The notes under the pieces were generated by a model. That model made no database searches. It was not told the DNA's origin and was given only the letters and a program-made list of their open reading frames with translations. Shown piece after piece: positions 9,344 through 58,376 of a stretch of DNA of 64,000 nucleotides (position 1 is its first letter; every line of letters begins with the position of its first letter). This stretch comes from Mizuhopecten yessoensis (Eukaryota): the NCBI RefSeq assembly GCF_002113885.1, contig NW_018480064.1, positions 821,619 through 885,618 on the forward strand. The letters are read 5' to 3'. The translations under genes were made by a program, and so were the position numbers.

Positions 9344-9397
9344 TCATTCGCTACCACTGGTCTCAGTGGGACTGGTACGTGAACTTCTGTGCCTTGT
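9344..9397 (-). CDS. CBFB: Putative distal terminal exon of CBFB (TRHRSSRTSPTETSGSE* in phase 0; (D)KAQKFTYQSH* in phase 1)
   Basis: Strong acceptor cttatttttattttgtccacag|ACA AGG CAC. This is a GC-richer island in AT-rich DNA, compatible with the phase-0 donor at 58257, and followed by long UTR-like sequence. It parallels human exon 6 (ARRQQDPSP... / GKKTTRP). Confidence 0.62.
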   Translation of the reverse strand, partial: TRHRSSRTSPTETSGSE

Positions 9398-11602
9398 CTG
9401 TGGACAAAATAAAAATAAGTTTGTTAGTTATGGTAGGAAAGAATGATACTTGGTCAAATACGTTATTACACGGTTACGGTATGTATACAAGTAATACATA
9501 GTGCATTATTATAAACATCATATTCTGTATAAAGAAATTTCTCTTAATTATGAAAATGTAGTCATAATTTGCTTCTGGGTAAAGAGGTTGTCTACCATAC
9601 AATTGCTTATGACTAAATGAGTAACCAGTCACTCAGCGTAACATCAAACTTTGCCATGTACTTATTTTCACAGTTTTATTTGTGATTACATCACAATGGC
9701 AAGTTTTAGTACAATGAAAAAATATTAACAACCTAATGAACTCAACTCCAGAAGTCCCCAGCAAAAAACTTATTCTAACACAGCATAATTACTTGAAATC
9801 GTAAAACTGCCAAAAAGGAGTACCGACAAATATCTCCTGTTGTACAGTAACCTGTGCATTGTAAATGGTTGAATAAAGGTGATCATATTTTTAGTCTCAT
9901 AGGTATTTTGAGTACATCTGTGATCTAAAGAAACTAAACAATAAGCAAAAACATTTCAAGCTAATATCCATGCAAACATTCATGAAAATGTGGCAAAATA
10001 GGGTGTAATGGCATATTTTTTTTATTTTAATATTTAGCTTCATAAGTATACATGTATTGTACTTAATTAGAACAAGACTAGGTTATCTCCCTTTGAACCT
10101 TTTAGACAGTAATATCACAAAAACTAAATGAATAAATCTTCATGCTGCAATTATTTATTTTTTGATATCGTTAAAACAAGTTTCAACATGCCAAAGAAAT
10201 TATTTGTTTTATATTATATATAGTGTGATATTTGCATTCATATTTGTATATTGAGATACAAAATGTATAGAGGTAACTAAATGAGTATAATTTTTTCCTT
10301 TTATTGTTAATTTCTTAATGAGAAATCTTTCATGTTGTGAAGTTTGATTTCCACCATGTCAAATGATTTATAATGAGATTACTGTGAACATACTAAATCC
10401 ACCACAATTTTAGCCCATTATCAAATTTAAACAAAATAGTCCATCATATTATTATCACACCTAAATATATGCAATAAAAAACAGTATACAGAATTTCCGT
10501 TAGTGTCATATATGATAATTCAGGACAATACTAAATACCACTAAAATATCAAAGTTTATAGTATTCCTTTAGATTTTCATTAAACAATATAAATTAGTTT
10601 CTGGCTGATTGTATAGTGCTGTTAAAATGTGGAATCATATTGGGTCAGTTCATCACTTACTTGTTGTAATTATTGAAAATAACTACTATTTAACTTTTTA
10701 CTGGATTTTGAAAGCTTACTGGGCCAACAATTTCCTCTTTTTTTTTTATTAATCTGAAACAACTTCTTTTCTACTATAAAATGCAACAACTGGCAGATTG
10801 CTGACAATAAATGCAGATCTTAAAGTTCAGGATAAAAAGTAGAGATAAAAAAAACCTTTTTGCTTTAAAGCTGACTATACTAGAAATGTTCTGGTTGTCC
10901 TTGATAGGGCTTTATTAGATAGACTAGGACTTTCTGATTGCCTTGGAAGCTAACCAGACCAGTAGTCTCTAGTTCTCCTTGACAAAAGATAAAGAGATGA
11001 GTAATACCTATATACAGACAATAAGCTAGAGAGCTAGTGCCAATCAGGTAGTTAACAGCAGACACCTTTAGTACCTGTGTTCTGGTACAGGTACCACATT
11101 CCTGGTACTAGACTGGGGCCGTGACCAGTCACCTTGGTATGCTGACCACACAAATACCGGAAATCAGGGGCAGGTCAATACTATATACCCCTATAGAACA
11201 GGTCAGATTTCTCTAGCTGGACAATGACCCAGTTTTCGCTTGACCAGGCATGTTATTGCTCCTATCACAACTTGACATAATGGGTAAATAGACATTACGA
11301 GGTCATCAAAGTGGAATTCCCGTTAATGTTGTGTATAAAATGTGGAGGTGGTCACACCTGCTGACCAGCATTGTAGTATCATTGGATTAGTAAGTGTAAG
11401 GTGGGTTCTATCTCCCACTGTTGAGCCATCAGCTGCCTTATTGCCAGGCGTGGCTGTGGACTGCTATTATTATGAGTTAATAGTCTAACCTATGTGGGGT
11501 ATATGGGGGCAGATAAAGGAGTGGAGTTGATGAGTCGAGAGCCGTCCATTCTAAACCTGTACAGGTGTTTGTAATGATCTTCAGGTAAAAAATCGGACTT
11601 AC

Positions 11603-11666
11603 CCCTATTCTATTTTGAACCATCCGGATAGGAAATGGCCAATGTATTATTTACTTGTGCGTCCAC
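11603..11666 (-). CDS. Candidate cassette exon giving C-terminus VDAQVNNTLAISYPDGSK*
   Basis: gctaacgaggcattgtacag|GTGGAC...AATAGGG|gtaagt. It has a branch-like CTAAC, a consensus donor, phase-0 entry and a stop at 11610-11612, but the polypyrimidine tract is weak. Confidence 0.33.
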
Positions 11667-12299
11667 CTGTACAATGCCTCGTTAGCTCTCAAACTGTTCA
11701 AATACCTCCCTACATTATCAACAGATATCGCATACAAATGAAACAATCTCTCCCCTTCTTATCTACAACAGTAGTTCAGAAACAAGTAAATCTGGGGAAT
11801 TCAAAAAGTAACAATATTCAAGTTTATTAAAGGTTTAAAAAAAAAAATATATATATATTCAGATGACCATACTTTACTACGGAGAGACCATACTGAGTTG
11901 ACAAATCCCACTTTTTACACCCTGTGACCACACACCCTATTTATAGATACAGGTAATTCCAGGTCCTTAAAGAATTTTGTTTTATTCTAGGCATGTCCTC
12001 TTACTTAATTGATAAAATAGTTGACATTCCTGACTTACTTGTGAGCTGTTAAACACACATACAGTAAATAGTTGGAGTGTGTATATCAAACATGTTTAGT
12101 CTAAGTAGATACTTGGGTAAGATATTGGGTAATATAAACAAGTGAATTACATATTTATGTAGAGGAGCAACAACAAATGATAAAATTAGTACAATACATG
12201 TGGTCAGCATTTCAAACATTTAAAGGTAGAGCTAAAAATCTTACGATGGGTACGCTGATTGTGAACAAAGCTTTTCTGAATTTCATTATCTTTAAATTG

Positions 12300-12937
12300 G
12301 TTCTATAGATTTATTACGTTTTTGCCAGTGAAATATCGGATTCTATCAACTTGATAAAATTGATATCTTTCACACTGTGACAAATATCAAAAGTGATATT
12401 TTCATAGTGTGAAAATATCACTTTTTAGTATTGACCAATCATAACAGTATCTTCTATTTGCTGCTTTCAAAGGCAACGATATTTTGTCACAGATTCACAT
12501 GAAGCGACGATAGAATAAGTGGTTGTTATGGTAAATGTTTGGTACACAGACTTAAGTATTGACATATATATACCAGTAATGACATTTTTATAAGCAATCA
12601 TACCAGAAAATAGCAGAAAACGTCGAAATTGCGTTGAGAATGCCACTCAAAATGGCGTGCAGCCTTGTTGTCATGAGCGTGACGTCATTAGAATATGGGG
12701 CTAATAATTACGCTTCTGATTCCCGCCCTTTTTTAATGCATTAGATTTTTCATGTTTTATGCTTTAAAAATGTAATAAACAGAAAATTCAATGATGTCTT
12801 CAGTAATAACAAATATATTTCACGAGTGTGGCTAATATTTTGATATTTTTCACGAGTGAAAAATATCAAAATATTAGCCACACTCGTGAAATATATTTGT
12901 TATTACTGAAGACACCATTAAATATCCTCTATATATA
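12300..12937. mobile_element. Non-autonomous foldback element with hairpins near both ends (possibly Crypton-like)
   Basis: Imperfect hairpin at 12361-12420 and a perfect palindrome at 12795-12914, ending in AATATCCTCTAT. The family assignment rests on resemblance only. Confidence 0.5.
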
Positions 12938-15900: not shown

Positions 15901-17044
15901 TGAAACAGAATACATATAATTTAAGAGGCTGGTATTGTGTGGCTTGAATCCTGCCATAACTTGGCCTAAGATAATTACTAGGTATATTTAATTTGCTCAG
16001 TACAAATCAATTAACACTGGATACAATACCAGCACAGATTTTTTTTATTGCCCTGGAGAAAAGATTTAACAATTGAGCACTTGCTTTTCTTGACTTTTTC
16101 AACTGGAGATCCAGTTGTTTTTTCTTCATTTTTTTTTTTCGCTGTCTTGATATTTTTGAAAAAGAAGATTGATGATTAATCCAGAATTGGTAGAAAGACA
16201 AAGACATGGTATTAATGATTATCACGACTGCAGCTTCCCATTTGACATCCGTGACATTAATTGTGACCATGTGAATATGTTGGTTGGATTCCATCTTATC
16301 TGAGTAAACAGCCGTGTTACCGTCGGTCGTGGTAGGACCCGAATCAGCCCTACTCTTCTCTATGCTGGTTGGCAAAGCGATTACTGCATCTGACAAATTA
16401 ACTAGGTCTTGGATCCGCCCCTTCACGATTTATAATGAATTAATTGAGTACACAAAAATTAAGTGATGAAAGATTGTGTTAAGCCGAATGAAGGCTGTAG
16501 GGTGGCTGTATCAAATACCACTAGATAATTTGCCGTCAATAGGGCCCGCTCAAAACCTTCTGTGCATTGAATTCAACTGCACTTGTTTAGACTAAAATTA
16601 ATTCCGCTATCTGGATTTGTTCATCTGTGAAGAAGGGTCCCCACACAATCAACAGCCAACTGAGATGATGCCAGACCTTGGAGGATGAAAGCAGGCACAA
16701 AATTGGCGATAAGGCACTCATCTTCGACCCATTCATCGCTCTCCTTGCGTTAAATCTGTCATGTGAGGAGTTATCACAAGGAGAACACACTCCTATCTAT
16801 TCACTATAGTTAGATACTTGGGTCTATCCCACTATTGTTCATTTAAGATACTCAGATATACTCACGATTGTCATATAGTCAAATCCACTGTAGCTCACAG
16901 TAACTTTTGCTTGATACCAAAAGAGAAATTAATATCAATAAAATAACTGAAAAGTACACAAAGACCAAGATAATATAACTTGCAAATATGATCAAGATAA
17001 AATTCCAGATGATAAATATATACCTAGATCAAATGTAAGCAATG

Positions 17045-19335: not shown

Positions 19336-20550
19336 AAGCATTGTGACAATGTACGTGTGGGTTATATATCACCGGAGTTAGAGAGTAGGTACTCTGTTTA
19401 AGAAGCATTGTGGTGAGGTACGCGCGGGTTATATATCACTGGAGTTAGAGAGTAGGTACTCTGTTTAACAAGCATTGTGGTGAGGTAAGCGCGGGTTATA
19501 TATCACCGGAGTTAGAGAGTAGGTACTCTGTTTAACAAGCATTGTGGTGATGTACGTGTGGGTTAAATAACACCGTAGTTAGAGAGTAGGTACTCTGTTT
19601 AACAAGCATTGTATTGAGGTACGCGCGGGTTATATATCACCGGAGTTCGAAAGAAGGTACTCTGTTTAACAAGCATTGTGGTGAGGTACACGCGGGTTAT
19701 ATATCACTGGAGTTAGAGAGTAAGTTCTCTGTTTAACAAGCATTGTGGTGAGGTACGCGTGGGTTATATATCACTGGAGTTAGAGAGGAGGTACTCTGTT
19801 TAACAAGCATTGTAGTGAGGTACGCGCGGGTTATATATCACCAGAGTTAGAAAGTAGGTACTCTGTTTAACAAGCATTGTGGTGAGGTACGCATGGTTTA
19901 TATATCACTGGAGTTAGAGAGGAGGTACTCTGTTTAACAAGCATTGTAGTGAGGTACGCGCGGGTTATATATCACCGGAGTTAGAAAGTAGGTACTCTGT
20001 CTAACAAGCATTGTGGTGAGGTACGCGTGGGTTATATATCACCGGAGTTAGAGAGGAGGTACTCTGTTTAACAAGCATTGTAGTGAGGTACGCGCGGGTT
20101 ATATATCACTGGAGTTAGAGAGGAGGTACTCTGTTTAACAAGGATTGTGGTGAGGTACGCGTGGGTTATATATCACTGGAGTAAGAGATGAGGTACTCTG
20201 TTTAACAAGCATTGTGGTGAGGTACGCGTGGGTTATATATCACTGGAGTAAGAGAGGAGGTACTCTGTTTAACAAGCATTGTGGTGAGGTACACGTGGGT
20301 TATATATCACCGGAGTTAGAAAGTAGGTTCTGTTTAACAAGCATTGTAGTGAGGTACCCGTGGGTTATATATCACTGGCGTTAGAGAGTAGGTACTCTGT
20401 TTAACAAGCATTGTGGTGAGGTACGCGCGGGTTATATATCACTGGAGTTAGAGAGTAGGTACTCTGTTCAACAAGCATTGCGTTGAGGTACGCGCGGGTT
20501 ATATATCACTGGAGTTAGAGAGTAGGTACTCTGTTTAACAAGCATTGTGA
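19330..20550. repeat. Minisatellite, 67-bp unit AACAAGCATTGTGGTGAGGTACGCGCGGGTTATATATCACTGGAGTTAGAGAGTAGGTACTCTGTTT
   Basis: Period 67 bp (19467 vs 19534), about 18 copies, with extra copies at 17880-18560. Confidence 0.95.
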
Positions 20551-31202: not shown

Positions 31203-34200
31203 TGATAATGTTTCTCCTGGGAACACAATCACAAGGATTATGTTTCTGCTGGGAACACAATCACAAGGATTATGTTTCTCCTGGGAACACAATCACAAGG
31301 ATTATATTTCTACTGGGAACACAATCACAAGGATTATGTTTCTGCTGGGAACACAATCACAAGGATTATGTTACCCCTGGGAACACATTCATAAGGATTA
31401 TATTACCCCTGGGGACACATTCACAGGGATTATGTTTCTCCTGGGAACACAATCACAGGGATTATGTTTCTTCTGGGAACACAATCACAAGGATAATGTT
31501 TCTACTGGGAACACAATCACAAGGATGATGTTACCCCCGGGAACACAATCACAGGGATTATGTTTCTCCTGGGAACACAATCACAAGGATTATATTTCTC
31601 CTGGGAACACAATCACAAGGATTATTTTTCTCCTGGGAACACAATCACTAGAATTATGTTTCTCCTCGGAACACAATCACAAGGATAATGTTTCTACTGG
31701 GAACACAATCACAAGGATGATGTTACCCCCGGGAACACAATCACTAGAATTATGTTTCTCCTCGGAACACAATCACAAGGATTATATTTCTCCTGGGAAC
31801 ACAATCACAAGGATTATTTTTCTCCTGGGAACACAATCACAGGGATTATGTTTCTCCTGGGAACACATTCACAAGGATTATATGTCTCCTGGGAACACAT
31901 TCACAAGGATTATTTTTCTCCTGAGAACACAATCACAAGGATTATGTTTCTCCTGGGAACACAATCACAAGGATTATATTTCTGCTGGGAACACATTCAC
32001 AAGGATTATTTTTCTCCTGGGAACACAATCACAAGGCTGATGTTACCCCCGGGAACACAACCACTAGAATTATGTTTCTCCTCGGAACACAATCACAAGG
32101 ATTATTTTTCTCCTAGGAACACAATCACAAGGAATCACAAGGATGATGTTTCTACTGGGAACACAACCACAAGGATGATGTTACCCCCGGGCACACAATC
32201 ACTAGAATTATGTTTCTCCTAGGAACACAATCACAAGGAATCACAAGGATGATGTTTCTCCTGGGAACACAATTACAAGGATTATTTTTCTCCTGGGTAC
32301 ACAATCACAAGGATTATGTTTCTTCTGGGAACACAATCACAAGGAAGATGGTACCCCCGGGAACACAATCACAAGAATTATGTTTCTCCTCGGAACACAA
32401 TCACAAGGATTAATTTTCTCCTGGGAACACAATCCCAAGGATTATGTTTCTACTGGAAACACAATCACAAGGATTATGTCTCTCCTGGGAACACAATCAC
32501 AGGGAGGATGTTACCCCCGGGAACACATTCACTAGAATTATGTTTCTCCTAGGAACACAATCACAAGGAATCACAAGGATGATGTTTCTACTGGGAACAC
32601 AACCACAAGGATGATGTTACCCCCGGGCACACAATCACTAGAATTATGTTTCTCCTAGGAACACAATCACAAGGATGATATTACCCCCGGGAACACAATC
32701 ATTAGAATTATGTTTCTCCTGGGAACAATTATGTTTCTCCTGGGAACAATTATGTTTCTCCTGGGAACACAATCAGAAGGATTATGTTTCTCCTGGGCAC
32801 ACAATCACAAGGATTATGTCTCTCCTGGGAACACAATCACAGGGAGGATGTTACCCCCGGGAACACAATTACTAGAATTATGTTTCTCCTCGGAACACAA
32901 TCACAAGGATTAATTTTCTCCTGGGAACACAATCAGAAGGATTATATGTCTCCTGGGCACACAATCACAAGGATTATGTGTCTACTGGGAACACAATCAC
33001 AAGAATGATGTTACCACCGGGAAGACAATCACTAGAATTATGTTTCTCCTGGGAACACAATCAGAAGGATTATGTTTCTCCTGGGCACACAATCACAAGG
33101 ATTATGTTACCCCCGGGAACACAATCGCTAGAATTATGTTTCTCCTCGGAACACAATCACAAGGATTATTTTTCTCCTAGGAACACAATCACAAGGAATC
33201 ACAAGGATGATGTTTCTACTGGGAACACAATAACAAGGATGATGTTACTCCCGGGAACACAATCACTAGACTTATGTTTCTCCTCGGAACACAATCACAA
33301 GGATTAATTTTCTCCTGGGAACACAATCCCAAGGATTATGTTTCTCCTGGGACCACAATCCCAAGGATTATGTTTCTACTGGAAACACAATCACAAGGAT
33401 TATACGTCTCCTGGGAACACAATCACATTATGTTTCTCCTGGGAACACAATCACTAGAATTATGTTTCTCCTAGGAACACAATCACAAGGAATCACAAGG
33501 ATGATGTTTCTCCTGGGAACACAATTACAAGGATTATTTTTCTCCTGGGAACACAATCCCAAGGATTATGTTTCTACTGGAAACACAATCACAAGGATTA
33601 TACGTCTCCTGGGAACACAATCACAAGGGTGATGTTACTCCCGGGAACACAATCACTAGAACTATGTTTCTCCTCGGAACACAATCACAAGGATTAATTT
33701 TCTCCTGGGAACACAATCCCAAGGATTATGTTTCTACTGGAAACACAATCACAAGGATTATACGTCTCCTGGGAACACAATCACAGGGAGGATGTTACCC
33801 CCGGGAACACATTCACTAGAATTATGTTTCTCCTCGGAACACAATCACAAGGATTAATTTTCTCCTGGGAACACAATCAGAAGGATTATGTTTCTCCTGG
33901 GAACCCAATCACAAGGATGATGTTTCTACTGGGAACACAACCACAAGGATGATGTTACCCCCGAGAACACAATCACTAGAATTATGTTTCTCCTCGGAAC
34001 ACAATCACAAGGATTAATTTTCTCCTGGGAACACAATCCCAAGGATTATGTTTCTACTGGGGACACAATCACAAGGATGATGTTTCTCCTGGGAACACAA
34101 TTACAAGGATTATTTTTCTCCTGAGAACACAATCACAACGATTATGTTTCTCCTGGGAACCCAATCACAAGGATGATGTTTCTACTGGGAACACAATAAC

Positions 34201-35550
34201 AAGGATGATGTTACTCCCGGGAACACAATCACAAGAATTATGTTTCTCCTCGGAACACAATCACAAGGATTATGCTACCCCTGGGAACACAATCACAGGG
34301 ATTATGTTTCTCCTGGGAACACAATCACAAGGATTATGTTTCTCATGTGAACACAATCACAAGGATTATGTTTCTACTGGGAACACAATCACAAGGATTA
34401 TTTTTCTCCTAGGAACACAATCACAAGGATTATGCTACTCCTGGGAACACAATCACAGGGATTATGTTTCTCCTGGGAACACAATCACAAGGATAATGTT
34501 TCTACTGGGAACACAATCACAAAGATTATGTTACCCCCGGGAACACAATCACTAGGATTATGTTTCTCCTGGGAACACATTCACAAGGATTATATGTCTC
34601 CTGGGAACACAATCACAAGGATATATTTTTCCTGGGAACAAAATCACAAGGATTATGTTTTTCCTGGGAACACATTCACAAGGATTATGCTTCTCCTGGG
34701 AACACAATCACAGGGATTATGTTTTTCCTGGGAACACATTCACAAGGATTATATTTCTCCTGGGAACACAATCACGAGGATTATGTTTCTCCTGGGAACA
34801 CACTCACAAGGATTATGTTTCTCCTGGGAACACATATAATCCTTGTGAATGTGTTCCCAGGAAAAACATAATCCCTGTGATTGTGTTCCCGGGGGTAACA
34901 TAATCTTTGGGATTGTGTTCCCAGTAGAAACATTATCCTTGTGATTGTGTTCCCAGGAGACATATAATCCTTGTGATTGTGTTCCCAGAAAAACATAATC
35001 CTTTGGATTGTGTTTCCAGGAGAAACATAATCCTTGTGATTGTGTTCACATGAGAAACATAATCCTTGTGATTGTGTTCACATGAGAAACATAATCCTTG
35101 TGATTGTGTTCCCAGGAGACATATAATCCTTGTAATGTGTTCCCAGGAGAAACATAATCCTAGTGATTATGTTACCCCCGGGAACACAATCACTAGGATT
35201 ATGTCTCTCCTCGGAACACATTCACAAGGATATATTATGTTTCTCCTGGGAACACAATCACAAGGAGTATGTTTCTCCTGGGAACACAATCACAGGGATT
35301 ATGTTTCTCCTGGGAACACAATCACTAGGATTATGTTTCTCCTCGGAACACATTCACAAGGATATGTTTCTGCTGGGAACACATTCACAAGGATTATGTT
35401 TCTGCTGGGAATACATTCACAAGGATTATGTTTCTCCAGGGAACAAAATCACAAGGATATGTTTCTCCTGGGAACACAATCACAAGGATTATATGTCTCC
35501 TGGGAACACAATCACAAGGATTATGTTTCTCCTGGGAACACAATCACAAG
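31203..35550. repeat. Minisatellite, 32-bp unit GGATTATGTTTCTCCTGGGAACACAATCACAA (~135 copies) with an inverted block
   Basis: Period 32 bp (3 units give the 32-aa ORF period MFLLGTQSQG...). The orientation is reversed at ~34832-35168. Confidence 0.97.
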
Positions 35551-35587
35551 CATTGCATTTCTTGAGTTTTGAGTTGTTGTTTTTTAA

Positions 35588-41221: not shown

Positions 41222-44200
41222 ATTTTGTGCTGAGTATGTTAGATGATTTTGTGTAGAGAATGTAAGATAAGATGATTTTGTGCTGAGGATGGTAGATGAT
41301 TTTGTGAAGAGAGTGTAAGATAAGATGATTTTGTGCTGAGGATGGTACATGATTTTATATTGAAGTTTGTGGATGATTTTGTGCAGAGGATTGTTGATGA
41401 TATTGTGCGGAGCATGTTAGATGATTTTGTGCTGAGAATGGTTGATGTTTTTGTGCCGAGGATGGTTGATGATATTGTGCGGAGCATGTTAGATGATTTT
41501 GTGCTGAGAATGGTAGATGATTATGTGCTGAGGATGGTAGATGATTTTGTACTGAGGATGGTAGATGATTTTTTGCTGAGGATGGTAGATGATTTTGTGC
41601 TAAGGATGTTAGATGATTTTGTGCTAAGAATGGTAGATGATTTTTTGCAGAGGATGTTAGATGATTTTGTGCAGAGGATGGTTGATGATATTGTGCGGAG
41701 CATGTGAGATGATTTTGAGCTGAGAATGGTTGATGTTTTTGCGCCGAGGATGGTTGATGATATTGTGCGGAGCATGTTAGATTATTTTGTGCTGAGAATG
41801 GTTGATGTTTTTGTGCCGAGGATAGTTGATGATATTGTGCGGAGCATGTTAGATTATTTTGTGCTGAGAATGGTTGATGTTTTTGCGCCGAGGATGGTTG
41901 ATGATATTGGGCGGAGCATGTTAGATGGTTTTGTGCTGAGAATGGTAGATGATTATGTGCTGAGGATGTTAGATGATTATGTGCTGAGAATGGTAGATGA
42001 TTATGTGCTGAGGATGTTATATGATTTTGTGCCAAGGATGGTCGATGATTTTGTGCTGAGGATGTTAGTTAGATGATTATGTGCTGAGGATGGAAGATGA
42101 TTTTGTGCTGGGGATGTTAGATGATTATGTGCTGAGAATGGTAGATGATTATGTGCTGAGGATGGTAGATGGTTTTGTACTGAGGATGGTAGATGATTTT
42201 TTGCTGAGGATGGTAGATGATTTTTTGCTGAGGATGGTAGATGATTTTTTGCTGAGGATGTTAGATGATTTTTTGCTGAGGATGTTAGATGATTTTTTGC
42301 TGAGAATGGTTGATGTTTTTGTGCCGAGGATAGTTGATGATATTGTGCGGAGCATGCTAGATGATTTTGTGCTGAGAATGGTAGATGATTATGTGCTGAG
42401 GATGGGAGATGATTTTGTACTGAGGATGGTAGTTGATTTTTTGCTGAGGATGGTAGATGACTTTGTGCTAAGGATGGTAGATGATTTTGTGCAGAGGATG
42501 GGAGATGATTTTGTGCTGAGGATGTTAGCTGATTTTGTGCCAAGGATGGTCGATCATTTTGTGCTGAGGATGTTAGATGATTCTGTGCTAAGGATGTTAG
42601 ATGATTATGTGCTGAGTATGGTAGATGATTTTGTGCTGAGTATGTTAGATGATTTTGTGTAGAGAATGTAAGATAAGATGATTTTGTGCTGAGGATGGAA
42701 GATGATTTTGTACTGAGGATGGTAGTTGATTTTTTGCTGAGGATGGTAGATGATTATGTGCTGAGGATGTTATATGATTTTGTGCCAAGGATGGTCGATG
42801 ATTGTGTGCTGTGGATGTTAGATGATTATGTGCTGAGTATGGTAGATGATTTTGTGCTGAGGATTTTAGATGCTTATGTGCCGAGGATGGTAGATGATTG
42901 TGTGCTGAGGATGTTAGATGATTTTGTTCAGAGGATTGTTGTTGATATTGTGCGGAGCATGTTAGATTATTTTGTGCTGAGAATGGTTGATGTTTTTGTG
43001 CCGAGGATGGTTGATGATATTGGGCGGAGCATGTTAGATGCTTTTGTGCTGAGAATGGTTGATGTTTTTGTGCCGAGGATAGTTGATGATATTGTGCGGA
43101 GCATGTGAGATGATTTTGAGCTGAGAATGGTTGATGTTTTTGCGCCGAGGATGGTTGATGATATTGGGCGGAGCATGTTAGATGATTTTGTGATGAGAAT
43201 GGTTGATGTTTTTGCGCCGAGGATGGTTGATGATATTGGGCGGAGCATGTTAGATGATTTTGTGCTGAGGATGGTAGATGATTTTTTGCTGAGGATGTTA
43301 GATGATTTTGTGCAGAGGATGGTAGATGATTTTGGGCTGAGGATGGTAGATGATTTTGTACTGATGATGGTATATGATTTTTTGCTGAGGATGGTAGATG
43401 ATTTTGTACTGAGGATGGTAGTTGATTTTTTGCTGAGGATGGTAGATGACTTTGTGCTAAGGATGGTAGATGATTTTGTGCAGAGGGTGGTAGATGATTT
43501 TGTGCTGAGGATTTTAGATGATTTTTTGCTGAGGATGGTAGATGATTATGTGCTGAGGATGGTATTTGATTTTGTGCTGAGGATGTTAGTTAGATGATTA
43601 TGTGCTGAGGATGGTAGATGATTTTGTGCTGAGGATGTTAGATGATTATGTGCCAAGGATGGTAGATGATTATGTGCTGAGGATGTTAGATGATTTTGTT
43701 CAGAGGATGGTAGATGATTTTGTGCTGAGGATGTTAGATGATTTTGTGCTGAGGATGTTAGATGATTTTGTGCCAAGGATGGTCGATGATTTTGTGCTGA
43801 GGATGTTAAATGATTATGTGCCGAGGATGGTAGATGATTATGTGCTGAGGATGGAAGATGATTTTGTTCAGAGGATGGTAGATGATTTTGTGCTGAGGAT
43901 GTTAGATGATTATGTGCCGAGGATGGTAGATGATTATGTGCTGAGGATGGTAGATGATTTTGTTCAGAGGATGGTAGATGATTTTTTGCTGAGGATGTTA
44001 GATGATTTTGTGCAGAGGATGGTAGATGATTTTGTGCCAAGGATGGTAGATGATTATTTGCTGAGGAAGGTAGATGGATTTTGTGCTGAGGATGGTAGAT
44101 GATTTTTTAGCTGAGGATGTTAGACGATTTTGTGCTGAGAATGGTAGATGATTTTGTGCTGAGGATATTAGATGATTTTTTGCTGAGGATGTTAGATGAT

Positions 44201-44350
44201 TTTGTGCAGAGGATGGTAGACGATTTTGTGCAGAGGATGGTAGATGAATTTGTGCTGAGGATGTTAGATGATTATGTGCCGAGGATTGTAGACGATTTTG
44301 TGCTGAGGATGTTAGACAATTTTGTGCTGAGGATGTTGAATGATTTTGTC
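41222..44350. repeat. Minisatellite, 24-bp unit GATGATTTTGTGCTGAGGATGGTA (~130 copies) with 72-bp higher-order blocks
   Basis: Period 24 bp; produces the DDFVLRMV and SSAQNHLP periodic ORFs. Confidence 0.97.
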
Positions 44351-48000: not shown

Positions 48001-48099
48001 TAAACATTATAAACGTGACCTAATACGTACTTTCATTGTTTTGATTAATACAAGTTAACTCACTACAAATTTAAGTGTTGGCAAGAAATGTGCACTTAA

Positions 48100-51000
48100 T
48101 TTAAGTGTTAAGGGAACTCTTAACATGAGCTAAGTTACTCAGTGTTGGATTGATGTACTATAAACAAAAATAACTTACTTTGTGTTGAGTGATTTACTAT
48201 AAGCATGAGCTGACTCACTCAGTGTTTGAGTGGTGTACTATAGGTATGAGCTAACTTACTCAGTCTTTGAGTGATGAACTATAAATATGAACTAACTTAC
48301 TCAATCTTTGAGTGATGAACTATAAGCATGAACTAACTCGCTCAGTGTTTGAGTGATGTACTTACTATAAGCATGAGCTATCTCGCTCAGTGTTTGAGTA
48401 ATGTACTATAAGTTTGAGCTAACTTACTCAGTATTTGAGTGGTGTACTATAAGAATGAGCAAACTCACTCAGTGTTTGAGTGATGCACTATAATCATGAG
48501 CTAACTTACTCAGTGTTTGAGTGATGCACTATAATCATGAGCTAACTTACTCAGTCTTTGAGTGATGAACTATAAATATGAACTAACTTACTCAATCTTT
48601 GAGTGATGAACTATAAGCATGAACTAACTCGCTCAGTGTTTGAGTGATGTACTTACTATAAGCATGAGCTATCTCGCTCAGTGTTTGAGTAATGTACTAT
48701 AAGTTTGAGCTAACTTACTCAGTATTTGAGTGGTGTACTATAAGAATGAGCAAACTCACTCAGTGTTTGAGTGATGCACTATAATCATGAGCTAACTTAC
48801 TCAGTGTTTGAGTGATGCACTATAATCATGAGCTAACTTACTCAGTCTTTGAGTGATGAACTATAAATATGAACTAACTTACTCAATCTTTGAGTGATGA
48901 ACTATAAGCATGAACTAACTCGCTCAGTGTTTGAGTGATGTACTTACTATAAGCATGAGCTATCTCGCTCAGTGTTTGAGTAATGTACTATAAGTTTGAG
49001 CTAAATTACTCAGTATTTGAGTGGTGTACTATAAGTATGAGCTAACTTACTGAGTGTTTGATTGATGTACTATAACCATTAGCTAACTTACTCAGTGTTT
49101 GAGTGATGCATTATAAGCCTGAGCTAACTAACTGAGTGTTTGGGTGATGAACTATAAGCTTGAGCTAACTTACTGAGTGTTTGATTGATGTACTATAATC
49201 ATGAGCTAACTTACTCAGTGTATTAGTGATTTACTATAAGCCTTAGCTAACTCACTCAGTGTTTGAGTGATGTACTATAAGCTTGAGCTAAATTACTGAG
49301 TGTTTGATTGATGTACTATAACCATGAGCTAACTTACTCAGTGTTTGAGTGATGTACTATAAGCCTGAGCTAACTAACTGAGTGTTTGGGTGATGAACTA
49401 TAAGCTTGAGCTAACTTACTGAGTGNGTACTATAAGTTTGAGCTAACTTACTCAGTATTTGAGTGGTGTACTATAAGAATGAGCAAACTCACTCAGTGTT
49501 TGAGTGATGCACTATAATCATGAGCTAACTTACTCAGTGTTTGAGTGATGCACTATAATCATGAGCTAACTTACTCAGTCTTTGAGTGATGAACTATAAA
49601 TATGAACTAACTTACTCAATCTTTGAGTGATGAACTATAAGCATGAACTAACTCGCTCAGTGTTTGAGTGATGTACTTACTATAAGCATGAGCTATCTCG
49701 CTCAGTGTTTGAGTAATGTACTATAAGTTTGAGCTAAATTACTCAGTGTTTGAGTGGTGTACTATAAGTATGAGCTAACTTACTGAGTGTTTGATTGATG
49801 TACTATAACCATTAGCTAACTTACTCAGTGTTTGAGTGATGCATTATAAGCCTGAGCTAACTAACTGAGTGTTTGGGTGATGAACTATAAGCTTGAGCTA
49901 ACTTACTGAGTGCTTGAGTGATGTACTATAAGCATAAGCTAACTAACTCAGTGTTTGAGTGATGTACTATAATCATGAGCTAACTTACTCAGTGTTTGAG
50001 TGATGTTGTATAAGTATGCCATTACTCATTTTGTGTTTGAGTGATGAACTATAAGCATGATATAACTTACTCAGTGTTTGAGTGATGTACTTTAAGCCTG
50101 AGCTAACTCACTCAGTGTTTGAGTGAGGCACTATAAGCATGAGCTAACTTACTCAGTGTTTGAGTGATGTACTAAAAGCCTGAGCTAACTTACTCAGTGT
50201 TTGGCTGATGAACTATAAGCATGAGCTAACTTACTCAGTGTTTCAGTGATGTTGTATAAGTATGACATTACTCATTTTGTGTTTGAGGGATGAACTATAA
50301 GCATGATCTAACTTACTCAGTGTTTGAGTGAGGTACTATAAGCATGAGCTAATTTACTCAGTGTTTGAGTGACGTATTATAAGTATAAGCTAACTTACTC
50401 AGTGTTTGAGTGATGCACTATAATCATGAGCTAACTTACTCAGTGTATTAGTGATTTACTATAAGCCTTAGCTAACTCACTCAGTGTTTGAGTGATGAAC
50501 TATAAGCATGATATAACTTACTCAGTGTTTGAGTGATGTACTAAAAGCCTGAGCTAACTTACTCAGTGTTTGGCTGATGAACTATAAGCATGAGCTAACT
50601 TACTCAGTGTTTCAGTGATGTTGTATAAGTATGACATTACTCATTTTGTGTTTGAGTGATGAACTATAAGCATGAGCTAACTAACTCAGTGTTTGAGTGA
50701 TGGACTATAATCATGAGCTAACTTACTCAGTGATTGAGTGAGGAACTATAAGCATGAGCTAACTTACTCAGTGTTTGAGTGATGTACTATAATCATGAGC
50801 TAACTTGCTCAGTGTTTGAGTGATGTACTATAAGCATGAGCTAATTTACTCAGTGTTTGAGTGACGTATTATAAGTATAAGCTAACTTACTCAGTGTTTG
50901 AGTGATGCACTATAATCATGAGCTAACTTACTCAGTGATTGAGTGATGAGCTATAAGCATGAGCTAACTTACTCAGTGTTTGAGTGATGTTGTATAAGTA

Positions 51001-52600
51001 TGACATTACTCATTTTGTGTTTGAGTGATGAACTATAAGCATGAGCTAACTTACTCAGTGTTTGAGTGATGTTGTATAAGTATGACATTACTCATTTTGT
51101 GTTTGAGTGATGAACTATAAGCATGATCTAACTTACTCAGTGTTTGAGTGATGTACTATAAGCTTGAGCTAACTTACTCAGTGTTGGAGTGATGTACTAT
51201 AAGCCAGAGCTAACTCACTCAGTGTTTGAGTGATGAACTATAAGCATGAGCTAACTTACTCAGTGTTTGAGTGATCTACTATAAGCTTGAGCTAACTTAC
51301 TCAGTGTTGGATTGATGTACTATAAGCCTGAGCTAACTCACTCAGTGTTTGAGTGATGTACTATAAGCATGAGCTAATTTACTCGGTGTTTGGGTGATGA
51401 ACTATAAGCATGAGCTTACTTACTCAGTGTTTGAGTGATGTACTATAAGCATAAGCTAACTTACTGAGTGTTTGATTGATGTACTATAAGCATGAGCTAA
51501 CTTACTCAGTGTTTGGGTGATGAACTATAAGCATGAGCTTACTTACTCAGTGTTTGAGTGATGTACTATAAGCTTGAGCTAACTTACTCAGTGTTTGAGT
51601 GATGTACTATAAGCCTGAGCTAACTTACTCAGTGTTTGGGTGATGAACTATAAGCATGAGCTAACTTACTCTGTGTTTGGGTGATGAACTATAAGCTTGA
51701 GCTAACTTACTCAGTGTTTGAGTGATGTACTTTAAGCATGAGCTAACTTACTCTGTGTTGAGTGATGCACTATAAACATGAGCTAACTTACTCAGTGATT
51801 GAGTTGTGTATTGTAAACATGAGCTGACTTACTCAGTGTTGAGTGATGTACTTTAAGTTTGAGCTATTTTACTCAGTGTTGAGTGATGTACTATTAGTAT
51901 GAGTTAACTTACTCAGTGTTTGAGTGATGTTTTATAAGTATGAGCTAACTTACTCCATGTTTGAGTGTTGTACTATAAACATGAGCTAACTCGCTCAGTG
52001 TTTGAGTGATGTACTATGAGCTTGAGCTAACTTACTCAGTGTTTGAGTGACGTATTATAAGTATGAGCTAACTTACTCAGTGTTTGAGTGATGTACTATA
52101 AGCATGAGCTAATTTACTCAGTGTTTGAGTGACGTATTATAAGTATGAGCTAACTTACTCAGTGTTTGAGTGATGTACTATAAGCCTGAGCTAACTTACT
52201 CAGTGTTTGAGTGATGTACTAAAAGCCTGAGCTAACTTACTCAGTGTTTGAGTGACGTATTATAAGTATGAGCTAACTTACTCAGTGTTTGAGTGATGTA
52301 CTATAAGCCTTAGCTAACTTACTCAGTGTTTGAGTGACGTATTATAAGTATGAGCTAACTTACTGAGTGTTTGGGTGATGTACTAAAAGCATGAACTAAC
52401 TAACTTACTCTTTGTTGAGTGATGTACTATAAAACATGAGCTAAGTTACTCGGTGTTAAGTGATGTACTATAAACATGAGCTAAGTTACTCGGTGATTGA
52501 GTTATGTAAACACAAGCTGACTTACTCAGTGTTTGAGTGATGTACTATTAGCATTAGCTAACTCACTCCATGTTTGTGTGTTAGGTGGACTATAAATATG
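48100..52600. repeat. Minisatellite, 41-bp unit ACTATAAGCATGAGCTAACTTACTCAGTGTTTGAGTGATGT, with a 291-bp higher-order repeat
   Basis: The variant CAGTCTTTGA recurs at 48261, 48552 and 48843 (291 bp apart). There is a single N at 49426. Confidence 0.97.
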
Positions 52601-55600
52601 AGCTATATTGAATGAGATATGTTTTAGTTATTTAGAAATTAGGATATATTAAAAGGTACATTGAAATATGTTATCAAATAGAACAAAAAACATTATTAAT
52701 GAGTAATACTGTTCCAAATTTTCAGGTGTTTATATTTAGTTACATATTCAACTGCATTAAACGATGTTATTGTTTACTCTGTTTAATGGGTGTATTCACC
52801 TTTACTCAATAGTGGTTATAAACTAGTTAATACTGTATTAAAATGTGCTATTCTATAATCTTTGAATGTATACAACCGTATTTAAAATAGTTATATACTC
52901 AAATGAATATTCAACTATATTATATTGTGATATTGCGGAGTGAACATAAACAACTCTAATTTGGTGATTTATACTTAGTTGAATATTGAATATTCAATTG
53001 CCTCAAATATGGTGTTTCAATACCGTTTTGAGGCAATATATTCAACTTTGTATTCAATAGCGGATTTAAGCTTTATTTACTTGTGTTATTTTACACTCCG
53101 TAGAATCAATAAATTAATGTATTTGACAGTATTTAATAGCGTTTTATACTTTGTGTTATCATGTTCTAAACCAAATCAATATATTCAAATCTATTTAGTT
53201 GTGTTAAATTAAATACACAGTTGAATATTCATCCTTATTCAGTTGTGTTACTCAATAATCTATAAATGAGTATACATCCAGTTGTTTGTAATATTTTTTA
53301 TATACATTTAAACTGTTTAATTTTTATATTGTGGAGAAAAAAAAATCTTTTTCTCTGCCTTATATTTGAGATCTACTGAACAATATAATAATCTTAAAGC
53401 TTTATTGAAATGAACTTTTTTTAAAAACATTCTTCTCAGTATCTCGTGCGTGAAACGGGGATTTTTTATTCATAAGTAATTATTTCATTTGGAAATAGCT
53501 ACATACATAATAAAAGAAAATGTGTTTACTCCTGTTGATATCAGACTTTGGTTTTATTGTAGTCCTACACAAATGTCAAAAAGTAGCAAGTTTGTGATAA
53601 GGATGAATGTTAAGTGTCCACAGGCAGCCAGCCAATCGTAGACAAAGACAGATGTAAATAAATTACTCTTAGCTCTCATACTTAATATATCAAAACTCAT
53701 GCATCACATATTTGACATTCTTTTCATTTCTAGTATGTTGAAAAATTACAAAAAGGTGATAAACCGGAAAAGCTGGCCGACACTCCTTGACGGCTGCCGA
53801 CAATAGAGAGAAATCATGATAGCAAGGCTGATATGTACTATTGTGGTTACCTTAACTCAAATTATCCTTTTGTAAAAAGACTTTTTCTTTCCAGGCACTT
53901 CAACTTAACAGATTTTTTCCAGACCCGTTTAAGTATAACATCCACGCTATGAGATACCGTTGTAAGACCTTTCTCTGTCTGTGTTCTGACAATTAGACAA
54001 GCTAGAGATTTGGTTTCTGACAGCTTTAGTGATAAATTACCAATTTTACGCAGAAACAAGTGATCAATACAAATTTTTGTCTTCATTTTAAAAATTATAA
54101 TGCAAGTTCAATCTTTTTCTCCTATTGCTGAAATGTATATTTCATGTCATTTTGTAAATAAATGAAAGGTCATCTATGATTTCAAAGCTAAAAAATAGAA
54201 ACAAGAAAGATATCAGCTCGTTTAGGATAGGAACACCAATTTTTTATTTTATTTTATTACTCATCAGGAAAATATAATAATCATGGAGATGTTTGCCGGG
54301 GCAGATGACTTATACTCTAATTGGTGCGTAAAGTGGGCGTAACGTATACCATTGAGTGGGAGTATAGCACTCCTCAGCATTGACAGTTCACCTCAGAAGG
54401 AAGGGCATCTATGTCTGTATTCTACAGGGTTCAAGGCACACTTGTCAAAAATCTCGTAAAATACTCACTTAAAAAAAAAAAAATCCAGAAAACTGCCAAA
54501 ATAGGGGGATATCAACAGGTATATTTCTTTAAGTCTGAGGTTTAAAATATTCACAACAGATATCTGACCGGGAATTTAGTAAATATTCATAACAACTGTT
54601 ATAAAGTGTGTAATTAAGAGTTGTGGATATTTATGTATTAAATGTTCAGGCTTGTGTAGAACTGATATTGTTAATATTACAAATGAAAATCCTGGTGAAC
54701 ACAACCATGCAAGTAATGTTTGTGTGTGGAGTGAATGTGTCAGGGATTTCAACGGAATATACTCTGTTTTTCCAAAATATTTCATTTTTAGTCTATCATA
54801 TTCACAAAAATAAAGGGTTTTAAATGTTCAGAATACTTATAAGTAAATCAAAAACAAATTTCAAGTTTGTTTGATGTGAATTAACAGCAATATATATATT
54901 AGTTAAGTTTTCACTGTAAGCGTGATACTACAATGAAATGTGTCGGTTGTGATGTGAAGTTGATTTATTACTGGGTAGATACAAAAGGTTATTGATGCTT
55001 AAGGATACTATATGGTCTTACACCAAAATTTACAGAAAGTTTACTTTGTAAAGTCACTCTTTAATAAAAGGTTTTTATTATTTTTTTATTATTAATTTCA
55101 GTCTGACTGGAAAACCTAATGTATCAGAGTTACGAAACCCTATCTTTAAATGTATCATCCATACAATATATCCATAATGATCCTGACTAAAACAGCCTAA
55201 TTTTTTAAGATTGGGTTTTATTTGAAAACTTGGCATTGAGAACCTCAATTTTGTTGCATGAAATTGCTAAATGCATCGACTTGATGTGTGCTAGGATGCA
55301 ATGTTCGAGGAAATCCAGAAATGGAGAACCAACCTGTTTGGTGAGTCAACAAACCTCAGCCTTCCCCTCATCACTGTACACAAATCCCCACCCCTATCAC
55401 ACGGAATATCAAATCTGTTCTGATGGATGGGAAAGCGCTGGCTTTAAACCTGCTAAATCCTTCTACGATATCATTACACACACTGATATTCATAATTTCT
55501 GTTTCAGGTCTTTTGAAATTTAACCACCTATTTTCCATACACTTAACACAAAGCTCATTCAAATATCTGGTTTCTTTTGCGACGAGGTGAGGACTTTTTA

Positions 55601-56744
55601 TGATACACATGCTACATATGTTTATCTTAAATATCACATTGAAACTTAAGCTTTTTTAGTGATTCGTCTTCTCATTATGTTTCTGTGACATTTCAAAACT
55701 TTATTGTTCAAAACTGACAAATTTACTTTTTATTTCGTTTGATGTAAAACTTTCTTGGGAATAAAATATATCCTAATTAGATGGATGTTTCTCATTTACT
55801 TGCATGGAAACAATCAAAATAGAAACAGACAAAATTATAAAATTTCCAATTTCTTCTTCTATTCAAAAAGGGGGAAATGATCTTTCTTTTTTAAGACCTT
55901 AATATCCATTACATCTTTCAGATGAAACTTTTGAAGCTGAAGTAGATCTTTGCTACTGAATAAGAGGTCCGATACATTTTAAGCGAGGAACAATGAGTGT
56001 TTAAACATTTGTCTATTTCAATTTTTAACATTAAGTATAATTTTCCTAAATGTTGAATAAATTATTTAATTAAGCATTACTTTGTCTTGGTATTGGATGT
56101 TTTGGAAAAAAAATATGTAGAAAACAGCTAGGTTTTGATTTTGTATAAAAAACATAGCCTTACAACTGGCAACTCCACTCTACCTGGTGACATATTTGTG
56201 TTACAAAACCCTGTTTCACTTTCAAAGTTGGAGCGCAAATTATTTATTTCTACATAAAAATAATTTTAATAAAAGCATTTGATTGAAACTGTTGAATGGT
56301 GTGACATGATGTGCTGAATAAGGTTGGGTACTTTGGGTTAGAGAGAGTTGGGCCTGTTGCCAGTGTGGAGGGCTGACATGTGTCAGGCAGGAAATCTGCA
56401 TGCTTATTAGCCTCTGACTCCCTATATAGTGCAATCAACAGAGGGTTCAACAAAAACAGAAGAGAGCTTCATATTTGTGCTACTCTGATACTCCAGTATT
56501 GTGAATGTGAATGGTAATTTAGAATCTCCTAGCAGTACAAATATATATGCAGGTGGCAGCGAGATTTAGTCCTCGCATGTGCTGTGTTCGCGCACTTTTA
56601 TGACACAAATTATGTAGCTGAAGCATCATATGAAACAAAAGGAAGCAACGAGTCAGATAGCTGTAACACAAAGACAAGGCAAATCAAACAAGCATAAAAC
56701 ATGGTAAAACCAGATTATAAAACATAAACAAATAAGAAATGATA

Positions 56745-58211
56745 AAAACTTTGTAAAATCAAACATTTATTCAACTTTGTAATATGACCCAGAAAGGTTA
56801 TAATAATTTTACAAAAAATAAACCATTCATATATATAATCTTTATATAGAATTTTATGTTACAATTCAGCAGTATCATATCAACACTATGAAGGGAGATA
56901 ACTCTAACCTTTTTTGAAGAATTTATTGATTTTTTACACATCTTAGAGTATAGGAATGAGTGTGAGGGTTGGCTTGTGGATAGCTACAGTCTGATCTGTT
57001 GCTCCCCAAGAGGGGGGCTCACATTCTAGCTTTCCAAACTTCTCTCACTTTCTCCTTCATAAATCTCATCATATATAGTACTCTCACACATAAATCAACC
57101 ATTTTTATACATTTTCAGCAACTCATTTAAACATTATATGATATTTTATATGATTTGATGGGTATTATATTCAGACACATTCACTCAATCACAGATATGT
57201 AGGGGTCTATAAAGTTTTACAAAGTTACTTAAACTTAATGCAAAAGAAGATTTTCCTATGTACATATCACCAGTTTATCCTCACCCTAAATATATCTTTA
57301 CATCTACATCTTGCATTCTGAGGCATTGCATAAGTTATGGAAGTTACCAAATGATCTACATATCATAATCTCGGTCCATTTTATATGACTAGAAAGTTTC
57401 ATATGGACTGAGAAAAGTTTAATACAACACTTTAGAATGATCTTTATACCATTTTACAACATCAAAATCTCACAATACTGAACAAACAGGAACTTAAAAC
57501 AACAGAAAAGCATTCATAAAAAAATGTTGGCAGTGAGAATGAAAAACATAATAGGCATTCAAAATAATTCATGTTCTAGTGAAATATTGTGGCCACATAA
57601 AGTTCAAAAATGAAAATTTGAGACAAAAATTGAAATCATAATAATAATGAAAAAATAATATCACAAGTGTCAGAGAAAATGTTTTGCCTTGACAACACTT
57701 AACAACAGTCACTGGAGCAGAGGAAAGAGGTGGTCTGCGCCTCCAGGTTGGAAGCAGGGACAGACGGACAGATATCCGAGGCGATTGCACAACACTGAAT
57801 GTGTCCCCTATGACAACGGAGAAAACATGCATGGTGACACAGGCCTAACTCCACTCGTCGTCCCATAGCTGGCCCTGAAAGTGGTGTAAAACAGTGGATG
57901 AAGCGTCTGTCAGGGTATGAAATGCCACAACGATAACACAGCATGCAGACCCGGTCCCTCCCCCGCCACGCCTCGGTCAACCGTGGTCAGTCCAATACTC
58001 ATGACCAAACCTACCCTAAGCTAGACAAGCCCAGTAATGTGCACACCTCACTATGTAAACTTTCTGTGCTGACGAACAATACTTTACTCTACTTTATTGC
58101 CATTTTAAAAAGTTTTGTATAAGTTTACAAAAGTTTTGCTGTGAGTGAGTTTTGTTCCCCAAAGTTCCTATGGGTTGGCGTAAAGCAGGGGGAGGGTAAG
58201 GGAGTGGGGGT
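56745..58211 (-). other. Putative proximal 3' UTR of CBFB
   Basis: T/TG-rich on the minus strand. AATAAA at 56766-56771 is followed by a U/GU-rich tract; further AATAAA signals occur near 56922 and at 58093-58098. The end point is uncertain. Confidence 0.45.
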
Positions 58212-58256
58212 CTAATGCTTGCCCTCTTCAGCTATACACAACAAAGCCTCTACTAC
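58212..58256 (-). CDS. CBFB: CBFbeta read-through C-terminal extension VVEALLCIAEEGKH* (proximal terminal isoform)
   Basis: The frame stays open past the weak donor GAG|GTAGTA to TAG at 58212-58214. It is followed by UTR-like sequence with AATAAA signals. Confidence 0.55.
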   Translation of the reverse strand, partial: VVEALLCIAEEGKH

Positions 58257-58376
58257 CTCTGCTTCCTGCTCTGCCTGTCGCTCCTGCTGCTGACGATACT
58301 GTCGTTGCCGTTCCTCAAACTCGCGCAGCCGCCGGTTATACTGTTCTATCTGATCTCTCAGCATCGCCGCTTCCAC
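58257..58376 (-). CDS. CBFB: CBFbeta exon (equivalent to vertebrate exon 5), up to the internal GT donor
   Basis: Acceptor ttttgtatttccgcag|GTG GAA. It encodes VEAAMLRDQIEQYNRRLREFEERQRQYRQQQERQAEQEAE, in frame with the upstream exon, and resembles Drosophila Big brother LRDQIDRYNQRLREFED and human EARRRTREFEDRDR (recalled). It ends at GAG|GTAGTA. Confidence 0.93.

Follow-up and report, generated by a model that had tools for sequence, protein, structure and literature searches.

CBFbeta is the obligate partner of Runx factors. The 3' half of its gene in the scallop Mizuhopecten yessoensis, made up of exons 4 and 5 and the 3' end, lies on the minus strand of a 64,000-nt stretch of contig NW_018480064.1 (positions 821,619 to 885,618, RefSeq assembly GCF_002113885.1). 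This whole stretch is referred to here as the window, and all features described below are on its minus strand. At the end of exon 5 of scallop CBFbeta, one weak splice donor probably leads to four different C-terminal outcomes. The exon ends in phase 0 at a donor that is kept weak, GAG/GTAGTN (the slash marks the exon border). In the first outcome, splicing to an acceptor at 57874, 382 nt away, adds GQLWDDEWS and a stop and produces the main mRNA in the runs examined. In the second, the intron remains unspliced and 14 intron codons (VVEALLCIAEEGKH) would be read up to a stop, in a transcript that shares poly(A) sites near 56754 with the first. Both of these outcomes are seen in RNA reads. In the third, the donor would bypass the proximal exon, poly(A) sites included, and be spliced 49 kb further on to an acceptor at 9397 (TRHRSSRTSPTETSGSE, then a stop). 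In the fourth, the same distal exon would be read one base out of frame (...VPVPLRPVVANDGHFVFPWKQRMYIL, then a stop), a frame that mussels reach via a 59-nt cassette exon. All four coding stretches are conserved, and M. yessoensis may well use the third and fourth outcomes too.

The CBFbeta Gene in the Window

An initial annotation, made from the letters of the window alone, had recognized an invertebrate CBFbeta, and Pfam PF02312 does match exons 4 and 5. The curated cut-off of this family is 25 bits. Exon 4 scores 66 bits (E 4e-18, profile positions 93-132), exon 5 scores 24.3 bits (E 2.8e-5, profile positions 134-166), and exons 1-3, which are found 14-16 kb past the window end, score 28-43 bits. 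The gene is single-copy: the entire assembly, searched in six frames, has one locus. Entry to the protein family came from a word search with the exon-3 open frame (region 22-62), which returned only a scallop cluster of ten proteins. The encoded residues are 100% identical to the M. yessoensis proteins XP_021342986.1 (isoform X1) and XP_021342987.1 (isoform X2). For the pearl-oyster CBFbeta ortholog there is a yeast two-hybrid result on Runx heterodimerization (PMC5453546).

Exon 4 (VHLKSQFILNGVCVIWKGWVDLHRLDGVACLEFDSERAE, 63132-63248) holds the stronger PF02312 match and ends at a strong donor, GTAAGT. Exon 5 (58257-58376) encodes the charged helix VEAAML...QAEQEAE. It begins at the acceptor ccgcag/GTGGAA at 58376, where loose read ends at 58378 continue into exon 4 (25 and 16 reads), and it ends in phase 0 at the weak donor GCAGAG/GTAGTA at 58257/58256. 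Because the exon 4 donor has the consensus GTAAGT, donor weakness is particular to exon 5. The exon start, the donor, the acceptor at 9397 and the sequences of the read-through and distal tails had all been named in the initial annotation, and each of them is borne out in sequence.

Splicing and Retention at the Exon 5 Donor

Eighteen runs from six studies contain 95-100% of 56700-58376. Most of these runs are taken to be transcriptomes because their contig sets are far smaller than the genome. Reads from four M. yessoensis runs were compared with 55601-58600, namely the raw-read RNA runs X23 and X24 and the contig sets X14 and X4. Run X4 is not clean RNA, since it also covers introns and downstream DNA. 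The sole junction from the 58257 donor is 58257 to 57874, which removes a 382-nt GT..AG intron (intron 5, 57875-58256) and is present in all four runs. It is carried by 5 and 4 spanning reads plus 3 short-overhang reads per raw-read run, and by junction unitigs of depth 129 and 55 in the contig sets. The spliced product ends ...QEAE-GQLWDDEWS, and this form is the main mRNA in the runs examined. The proximal terminal exon 6 (56754-57874), which these junction reads and contigs define, consists of the coding end for GQLWDDEWS with its stop (57874-57845) and a 3' untranslated region (UTR). The GQLWDDEWS exon is known only from scallops.

The same intron is also retained. Exon 5 is covered to a depth of ~24-30 in X23 and X24, where unspliced intron 5 reaches 3-6, and intron 4 has a depth of 0 in X23, X24 and X14. 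In X14 an unspliced unitig of depth 17.5 stands against 129 for the junction. Retention amounts to about one eighth to two fifths of molecules (12-40%) and differs between runs, and it is specific to intron 5, since intron 4 has no unspliced reads in X23, X24 and X14. RNA coverage stops near 56754-56900. An X14 contig ends at 56754, 12 nt past an AATAAA at 56771-56766, and a second AATAAA lies at 56927-56922. Unspliced intron 5, an in-frame stop after 14 codons and a downstream poly(A) site together mark a retained-intron form.

The Glu/Val donor had been put forward as a decision point for alternative C-termini, and reads both spliced and unspliced at this site make it a real one. The choice had been described as a two-way one between read-through and the exon at 9397; its dominant partner is instead the proximal acceptor at 57874, which had been missed. 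A short transcript had also been set against one needing 49 kb more transcription. This contrast is relevant only to the distal form, which went undetected in the runs, because the retained and the proximally spliced mRNAs share a 3' end at ~56754. Read mapping, suggested as a check on the choice, confirms that the donor is used, that coverage extends through the read-through and that transcripts end near 56754, and in the four runs it yields no junction to 9397. The weakness of the donor may be the means by which the choice is regulated.

A candidate second donor of the GC type, GAAGAGG/GCAAGC (58221-58222), lies 34 nt past the first. A matching GC site accounts for the tail ...EEG/PAMG of isoform X2 of the scallop Argopecten irradians, whose isoforms X1-X3 are RefSeq Gnomon models (XP_069112638-40). 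At 58222 no junction reads are found in the four M. yessoensis runs. Joining 58222 to 57874 would yield a 58-aa Cys/His-rich tail (GPAMGRRVELGLCHHACF..., window 57874-57702, +1 frame), and in A. irradians the same +1 frame stops after four residues, so that this tail is not conserved. The candidate was rejected, as it has no reads and its product here is the non-conserved 58-aa tail.

The Read-Through Tail

Reading on from 58256 gives the extension VVEALLCIAEEGKH, 14 codons followed by TAG (58212-58256), which is the tail of RefSeq isoform X1. When the whole window is searched in six frames, the Mytilus read-through tail falls at 58256-58218 (E 0.003). Translation past the exon-5 donor gives VVEALLCFSEERKS and a stop in Mytilus trossulus and VVQALLCISEDRKS and a stop in the chiton Liolophura, two loci that have no annotated read-through tail. 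Among annotated or assembled proteins the tail is found in three Mytilus species, in isoform X1 of Crassostrea virginica (VIDALLCISEDRKS) and in the unionid Sinanodonta (VVQALLRFSEERKS). Sea slugs and Batillaria have its first ten residues only, the annelid Paralvinella (VVEGLLTLTE...) keeps the first six, and Argonauta has a shorter, weaker version, VIKVLFKFLQ and a stop. Comparison of C-termini in related animals had been proposed as a further check; it finds the tail kept in molluscs and partly in an annelid, and missing from lamprey, starfish, acorn worm and horseshoe crab.

The read-through form could be merely incompletely spliced RNA from a weak donor, without any function. The donor is weak, retention is a minority event of 12-40% that depends on the run, and intron 5 and its flanks are anyway 84-93% conserved between two scallops. 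We consider this very unlikely in view of a codon-level test in four species. Chiton and bivalves alike preserve the 14 codons and the position of the stop, and changes fall at third positions (5/1/12 variable sites at codon positions 1, 2 and 3). The tail has a pN of 0.09-0.20 over a pS of 0.75-1.16 (saturated), equal to that of the constitutive exon 5, whereas over the 45 nt beyond the stop identity is random (18-27%). Intron 4, moreover, has no unspliced reads in the same runs. Decay via a downstream junction would not be expected either, because the read-through stop lies in the last exon of the retained mRNA.

The donor reads GTAGTN in all four species of the codon test. Its +4 G and +5 T are fixed because they belong to the second Val codon. 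As judged from these alignments, the read-through peptide is an old alternative tail of lophotrochozoan CBFbeta under constraint at the protein level, and the weak donor has been maintained together with it. An AlphaFold2 model, built from 11 sequences and poor for the N-terminal domain, has residues 130-186 as one helix that runs through the extension (pLDDT 89-95 over 141-180). The model suggests that the read-through tail would add a hydrophobic end to the very charged exon-5 helix. Any function of the alternative tails would presumably be the binding of partners outside the Runx-binding domain.

The Distal Terminal Exon

The distal terminal exon follows the acceptor ttgtccacag/ACAAGG at 9397, and its frame A (9344-9397) encodes TRHRSSRTSPTETSGSE and a stop. 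A joint from 58257 to 9397 would read ...GCAGAG + ACAAGGCAC. Six-frame searches of the whole window place the distal tail of A. irradians (E 2e-8) and that of Mytilus (E 2.9e-5) at 9397-9347. The placements of tails at 58256 and 9397 are not due to chance, because orthologous mollusc tails match exactly there. Frame A is identical at 17 of 17 residues to the terminal exon of A. irradians X1, a species in which the distal exon lies 26.8 kb past exon 5, and the two scallop loci are collinear via about twenty conserved blocks. From the acceptor on, the distal exon and ~200 nt of UTR are near-identical in A. irradians, whereas the adjoining upstream intron does not align. The sole two differences in the 54 coding bases are those between AGG and the CGT of A. 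irradians, both Arg. The conserved distal 3' UTR (9130-9297), likewise near-identical in A. irradians, contains an ATTAAA at 9251-9246. Orthology and conservation make both tails named in the initial annotation genuine coding sequence.

The distal tail belongs to a class that consists of basic residues followed by SPS.TSGS (RRxxxxSPSxTSGS). Members of this class are found in the molluscs Mytilus (TSRRSSRSSPAETSGSE), chiton, Gigantopelta and Argonauta, in the nemerteans Lineus and Tubulanus and in the annelid Owenia. They are also present in spiders and Limulus, in two hemichordates (ARRQSHEPSPSGTSSSND), in Acanthaster and Asterias, and in lamprey and the vertebrate 187-aa form (ARRQQDPSPGSNLGGGDDLKLR). 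In Limulus and Acanthaster, the tail exon follows an intron at the same phase-0 position. Because the tail class and the intron position are shared, the 9397 exon is the ortholog of vertebrate exon 6, its frame A is the ancestral CBFbeta tail, and the donor belongs to an ancestral bilaterian intron. The donor had initially been placed at the same position as the vertebrate exon 5/6 boundary, and this holds. Intron positions are known to be conserved between sea urchin and vertebrates (PMC1395345).

The long intron between the two terminal exons (9398-56753) includes ~17 kb of minisatellites, in arrays whose repeat units measure 24-96 nt (for example 31204-35554, 41222-44349 and 48124-52580), which account for much of the difference in size from the 27-kb intron of A. 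irradians. Between the minisatellites lie the roughly twenty collinear blocks, at 70-85% identity, and these have no Pfam match. Five long open frames in the 49-kb intron were considered as other genes and have no Pfam match either.

A Second Frame in the Distal Exon

The distal exon has a second open frame, offset by one base. Frame B (9298-9396) overlaps frame A, reads QGTEVHVPVPLRPVVANDGHFVFPWKQRMYIL and a stop, and ends ...VPVPLRPVVANDGHFVFPWKQRMYIL. By tblastn, long CBFbeta tails match 9396-9298 (oyster E 1e-10, mussel E 1e-8). The long mussel and oyster isoforms (255-261 aa) end ...VPVPLRPVAVND...[LM]YIL, and the ending is YIM or LYIL in the 269-276-aa isoforms of Solemya, Patella and Haliotis. 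In Mytilus, both tails lie on one exon, one base apart (37056 and 37057 of the locus), and frame B is entered via the 59-nt cassette exon (VSSSTQTRGAKMIADPPVRK), 4.5 kb past exon 5. In Mytilus the exon is dual-coding, with both frames in annotated products, and in the window both frames are open and conserved. A similar open frame B lies at the corresponding place in A. irradians and Mytilus, and Argonauta has a related frame; it is not kept in chiton, Acanthaster or Limulus. Frame B accounts for the strong conservation of the apparent UTR after the frame A stop. M. yessoensis may use this frame, as the alignments would suggest.

A weak candidate for a cassette exon of 38 nt (SSTRNVVPVPEH-) lies at 11075-11112. 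It has AG..GT borders and a length of 2 mod 3, it resembles the oyster cassette SSLQTRGMKPVPE, and it would enter frame B. The candidate is unconfirmed, because A. irradians has a 10-nt deletion over its acceptor.

Evidence For and Against Use of the Distal Exon

Several observations weigh against four outcomes in M. yessoensis. In the four runs compared with 55601-58600 there is no 58257 to 9397 junction and no loose read end toward 9397, and unexplained partial reads number at most ~2 per raw-read run. The exon 5 depth of ~24-30 is about twice its outflow in X23, where spliced and retained molecules together reach ~13-16, and the gap is smaller in X24; this excess may be coverage noise or an unseen partner. 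RefSeq has no distal isoform in M. yessoensis, Pecten maximus or Ylistrum balloti. A cassette leading to frame B is not established in scallops, and the candidate is disrupted in A. irradians. The limits of the structural model given above count on the same side.

The exon at 9397 might then be a relic in M. yessoensis that is not spliced any longer, its role having passed to the proximal exon specific to scallops. The missing junction agrees with this, as do the lack of the distal exon in RefSeq for three scallop species out of four and an intron swollen to 49 kb, with its ~17 kb of minisatellites. We regard a relic as unlikely. The 17/17 identity is shared with A. irradians, where the isoform is annotated, and the only two base changes are synonymous. 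Nothing in the acceptor, the two frames, their stops or the UTR block is disrupted. Raw reads, in addition, come from only two samples. One weak donor with four outcomes remains our preferred explanation.

Comparison With the Vertebrate CBFB Switch

Vertebrates make Cbfbeta1 (187 aa) and Cbfbeta2 (182 aa) (Ogawa 1993; Wang 1993; both as cited in PMC5789415). The two-donor origin of these isoforms, which the initial annotation had stated, is confirmed in the same paper. The two exon 5 donors lie 31 nt apart and are both joined to exon 6, which is read in two frames (PMC5789415). Cbfbeta1 and Cbfbeta2 differ in function in vivo, teleosts use a separate extra exon, and the event has been dated "as early as bony fish, perhaps earlier" (PMC5789415). 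Types 1-3 of CBFbeta have been described in elephant shark (PMC3974841). The vertebrate protein tails that we retrieved agree with the published two-isoform account.

The scallop gene belongs to the same family as vertebrate CBFB and has the same phase-0 Glu/Val intron after the charged helix. The terminal exon is orthologous (ARRQQDPSP... in vertebrates, TRHRSSRTSP... here), an alternative tail is taken from sequence past the first donor, and the terminal exon can be read in two frames. The arrangements differ in that vertebrates have two donors that lead to exon 6, whereas the scallop opposes splicing to retention and adds a lineage-specific proximal terminal exon. The second frame of molluscs is entered via a cassette exon at offset 1, whereas that of vertebrates has offset 2, as deduced from protein tails. 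Two donors joined to one acceptor are modelled only in A. irradians X2, and the four M. yessoensis runs have only the 58257 to 57874 junction.

These likenesses raise the possibility that a binary Glu/Val switch, read-through against a 49-kb splice, was inherited from the protostome-deuterostome ancestor and is homologous to the vertebrate 182/187-aa pair. An orthologous exon stands behind the shared intron, and exon 5 is extended past the Glu/Val donor in both groups. In the A. irradians X2 model a further donor, 34 nt downstream, is even spliced to the same acceptor in another frame, compared with a spacing of 31 nt in vertebrates. The extensions themselves were compared in a likeness test, in which the amniote extension was scored against 13 lophotrochozoan extensions and the null consisted of the read-throughs of all AG/GT sites in the window. 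The amniote extension VRVSQLLAVT has a null fraction of 0.015 by mean score, which places it in the top 1.5%, but of 0.18 by best score. For the bird variant the fractions are 0.24 and 0.51. The resemblance of VVEALL to VRVSQLL, which had been remarked on initially, does not stand clearly above chance. Hemichordate, shark and teleost inserts are not significantly similar to the mollusc extension (null fractions 0.05-0.68).

Other evidence makes an inherited switch quite improbable. The main partner of the scallop donor is 57874, not 9397. A comparable read-through tail is absent from lamprey (VR), Amphiura (VRDHRAS), Acanthaster (VGYTIGRTVEM) and Saccoglossus (VSYTFLERKG), each of which then stops, and the Limulus read-through is unrelated to the mollusc extension. 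The Val shared at the donor is forced, because GT in phase 0 makes it so. Teleosts use a separate exon (PMC5789415), and the alternative frames of the terminal exon differ in their offset, 2 in vertebrates and 1 in molluscs. Whether the donor switch was ancient or convergent had been left undecided at first. The intron and exon 6 go back to the ancestor of bilaterians. The switch itself is unlikely to have been inherited from it, and a single old intron that was reused independently fits better. Our verdict is that the observation is real and partly annotated already, and that it converges on the vertebrate switch rather than being homologous to it.

The hemichordates Ptychodera and Glandiceps (X1) carry an in-frame 25-aa cassette, ENDMQ[IL]VLEACV..., after exon 5 and ahead of the ARRQ..SPS exon, and one shark isoform has 17 extra residues inserted there. 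One could speculate that an optional hydrophobic helical segment and a multi-frame terminal exon at the exon-5 donor were an ancestral bilaterian habit, with VV[EQ]ALL... of molluscs and annelids, ..IVLEACVNQL.. of hemichordates, ..GLEEAVNGAL.. of shark and VRVSQLLAVT of amniotes as the proposed segments, although this is a long shot. If such a habit existed, vertebrate Cbfbeta2, which is regarded as an invention of vertebrates linked to thymus homing (PMC5789415), would descend from a much older switch.

Other Observations on the Locus

RefSeq scallop models begin 28 aa before MPRVVPDQ (MNEVTSDSMLSFVTNTLCCEV...), in exon 1 (1471-1839 of the upstream locus, outside the window). A stretch resembling this N-terminal extension (MLSFVANTLCCEV) heads the chiton protein and another lophotrochozoan protein, and the A. 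farreri cDNA protein begins at MPRVV. Scallop CBFbeta may have two start codons. In Argonauta and Elysia, PHAF1 is found just upstream of CBFbeta, on the opposite strand. PHAF1 is a neighbor of CBFB in vertebrates too, and a CBFbeta protein of a shark carries a PHAF1 label. This adjacency may be an old synteny. In Paralvinella, two neighboring gene models (239 aa and 150 aa) each cover part of CBFbeta, probably an annotation artefact. The window contains a single N, at 49426.

Annotated Isoforms and Known Systems

Part of the isoform repertoire is already present in databases. The GQLWDDEWS tail (X2, 211 aa) and the VVEALLCIAEEGKH tail (X1, 216 aa) are both found in M. yessoensis, P. maximus and Y. 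balloti. The GQLWDDEWS tail also ends A. irradians X3 and AGI44579.1, a cDNA-derived protein of Azumapecten farreri. The 219-aa X1 of A. irradians ends TRHRSSRTSPTETSGSE, letter-identical to the 9397 tail, and A. irradians X2 ends ...VVEALLCIAEEG-PAMG. The RefSeq scallop models thus include the retained-intron and GQLWDDEWS tails of M. yessoensis and the distal tail of A. irradians, whereas no distal-exon isoform is annotated in M. yessoensis.

The literature searched has nothing on mollusc tail conservation, exon 6 orthology or the second frame, and the pearl-oyster (PMC5453546) and sea-urchin (PMC1395345) papers describe no C-terminal CBFbeta variants. As far as this search extends, the orthology of the distal exon, the lophotrochozoan-wide constraint on the read-through tail and the dual-frame mollusc terminal exon are new. 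The C-terminal variants of vertebrate CBFB, with their distinct in vivo functions, have been treated as a vertebrate novelty (PMC5789415), and the scallop results alter this picture. Molluscs and at least one annelid retain an alternative tail of their own at the same donor, under protein-level constraint from chiton to bivalves. In conchiferan molluscs, the distal exon encodes two conserved overlapping tails. For annotation, the unannotated vertebrate exon 6 ortholog 49 kb downstream is a missing terminal exon in M. yessoensis. For biology, the gene is a second, independent system in which to ask what CBFbeta tails do, and a clean case of the same intron reused for isoform switching.

Among the closest known systems are the CBFbeta genes of mussels and oysters. 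Isoforms X1-X3 of M. edulis and X1-X3 of C. virginica have three tail classes as in the scallop window, namely read-through (VVEALLCFSEERKS, VIDALLCISEDRKS), distal frame A and distal frame B (...MYIL). Mussels and oysters lack the GQLWDDEWS exon, and the proximal tails of oysters are different and very short (GF, FY). Scallops have no annotated cassette route to frame B, whereas mussels and oysters do.

Alternative last exons, composite terminal exons and dual-coding exons are well known from other genes, such as secreted versus membrane IgM, p16/ARF of CDKN2A and XLas/ALEX of GNAS. The scallop gene is like these systems in that a proximal exon linked to a poly(A) site, a retained intron with a stop and a distal exon are alternatives to one another. 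It is also like dual coding of the CDKN2A and GNAS type, in that one exon is open in two overlapping frames. The scallop differs from them in that all choices are made at one donor of a small transcription-factor subunit, and molluscs differ in that both overlapping frames are conserved across mollusc classes.

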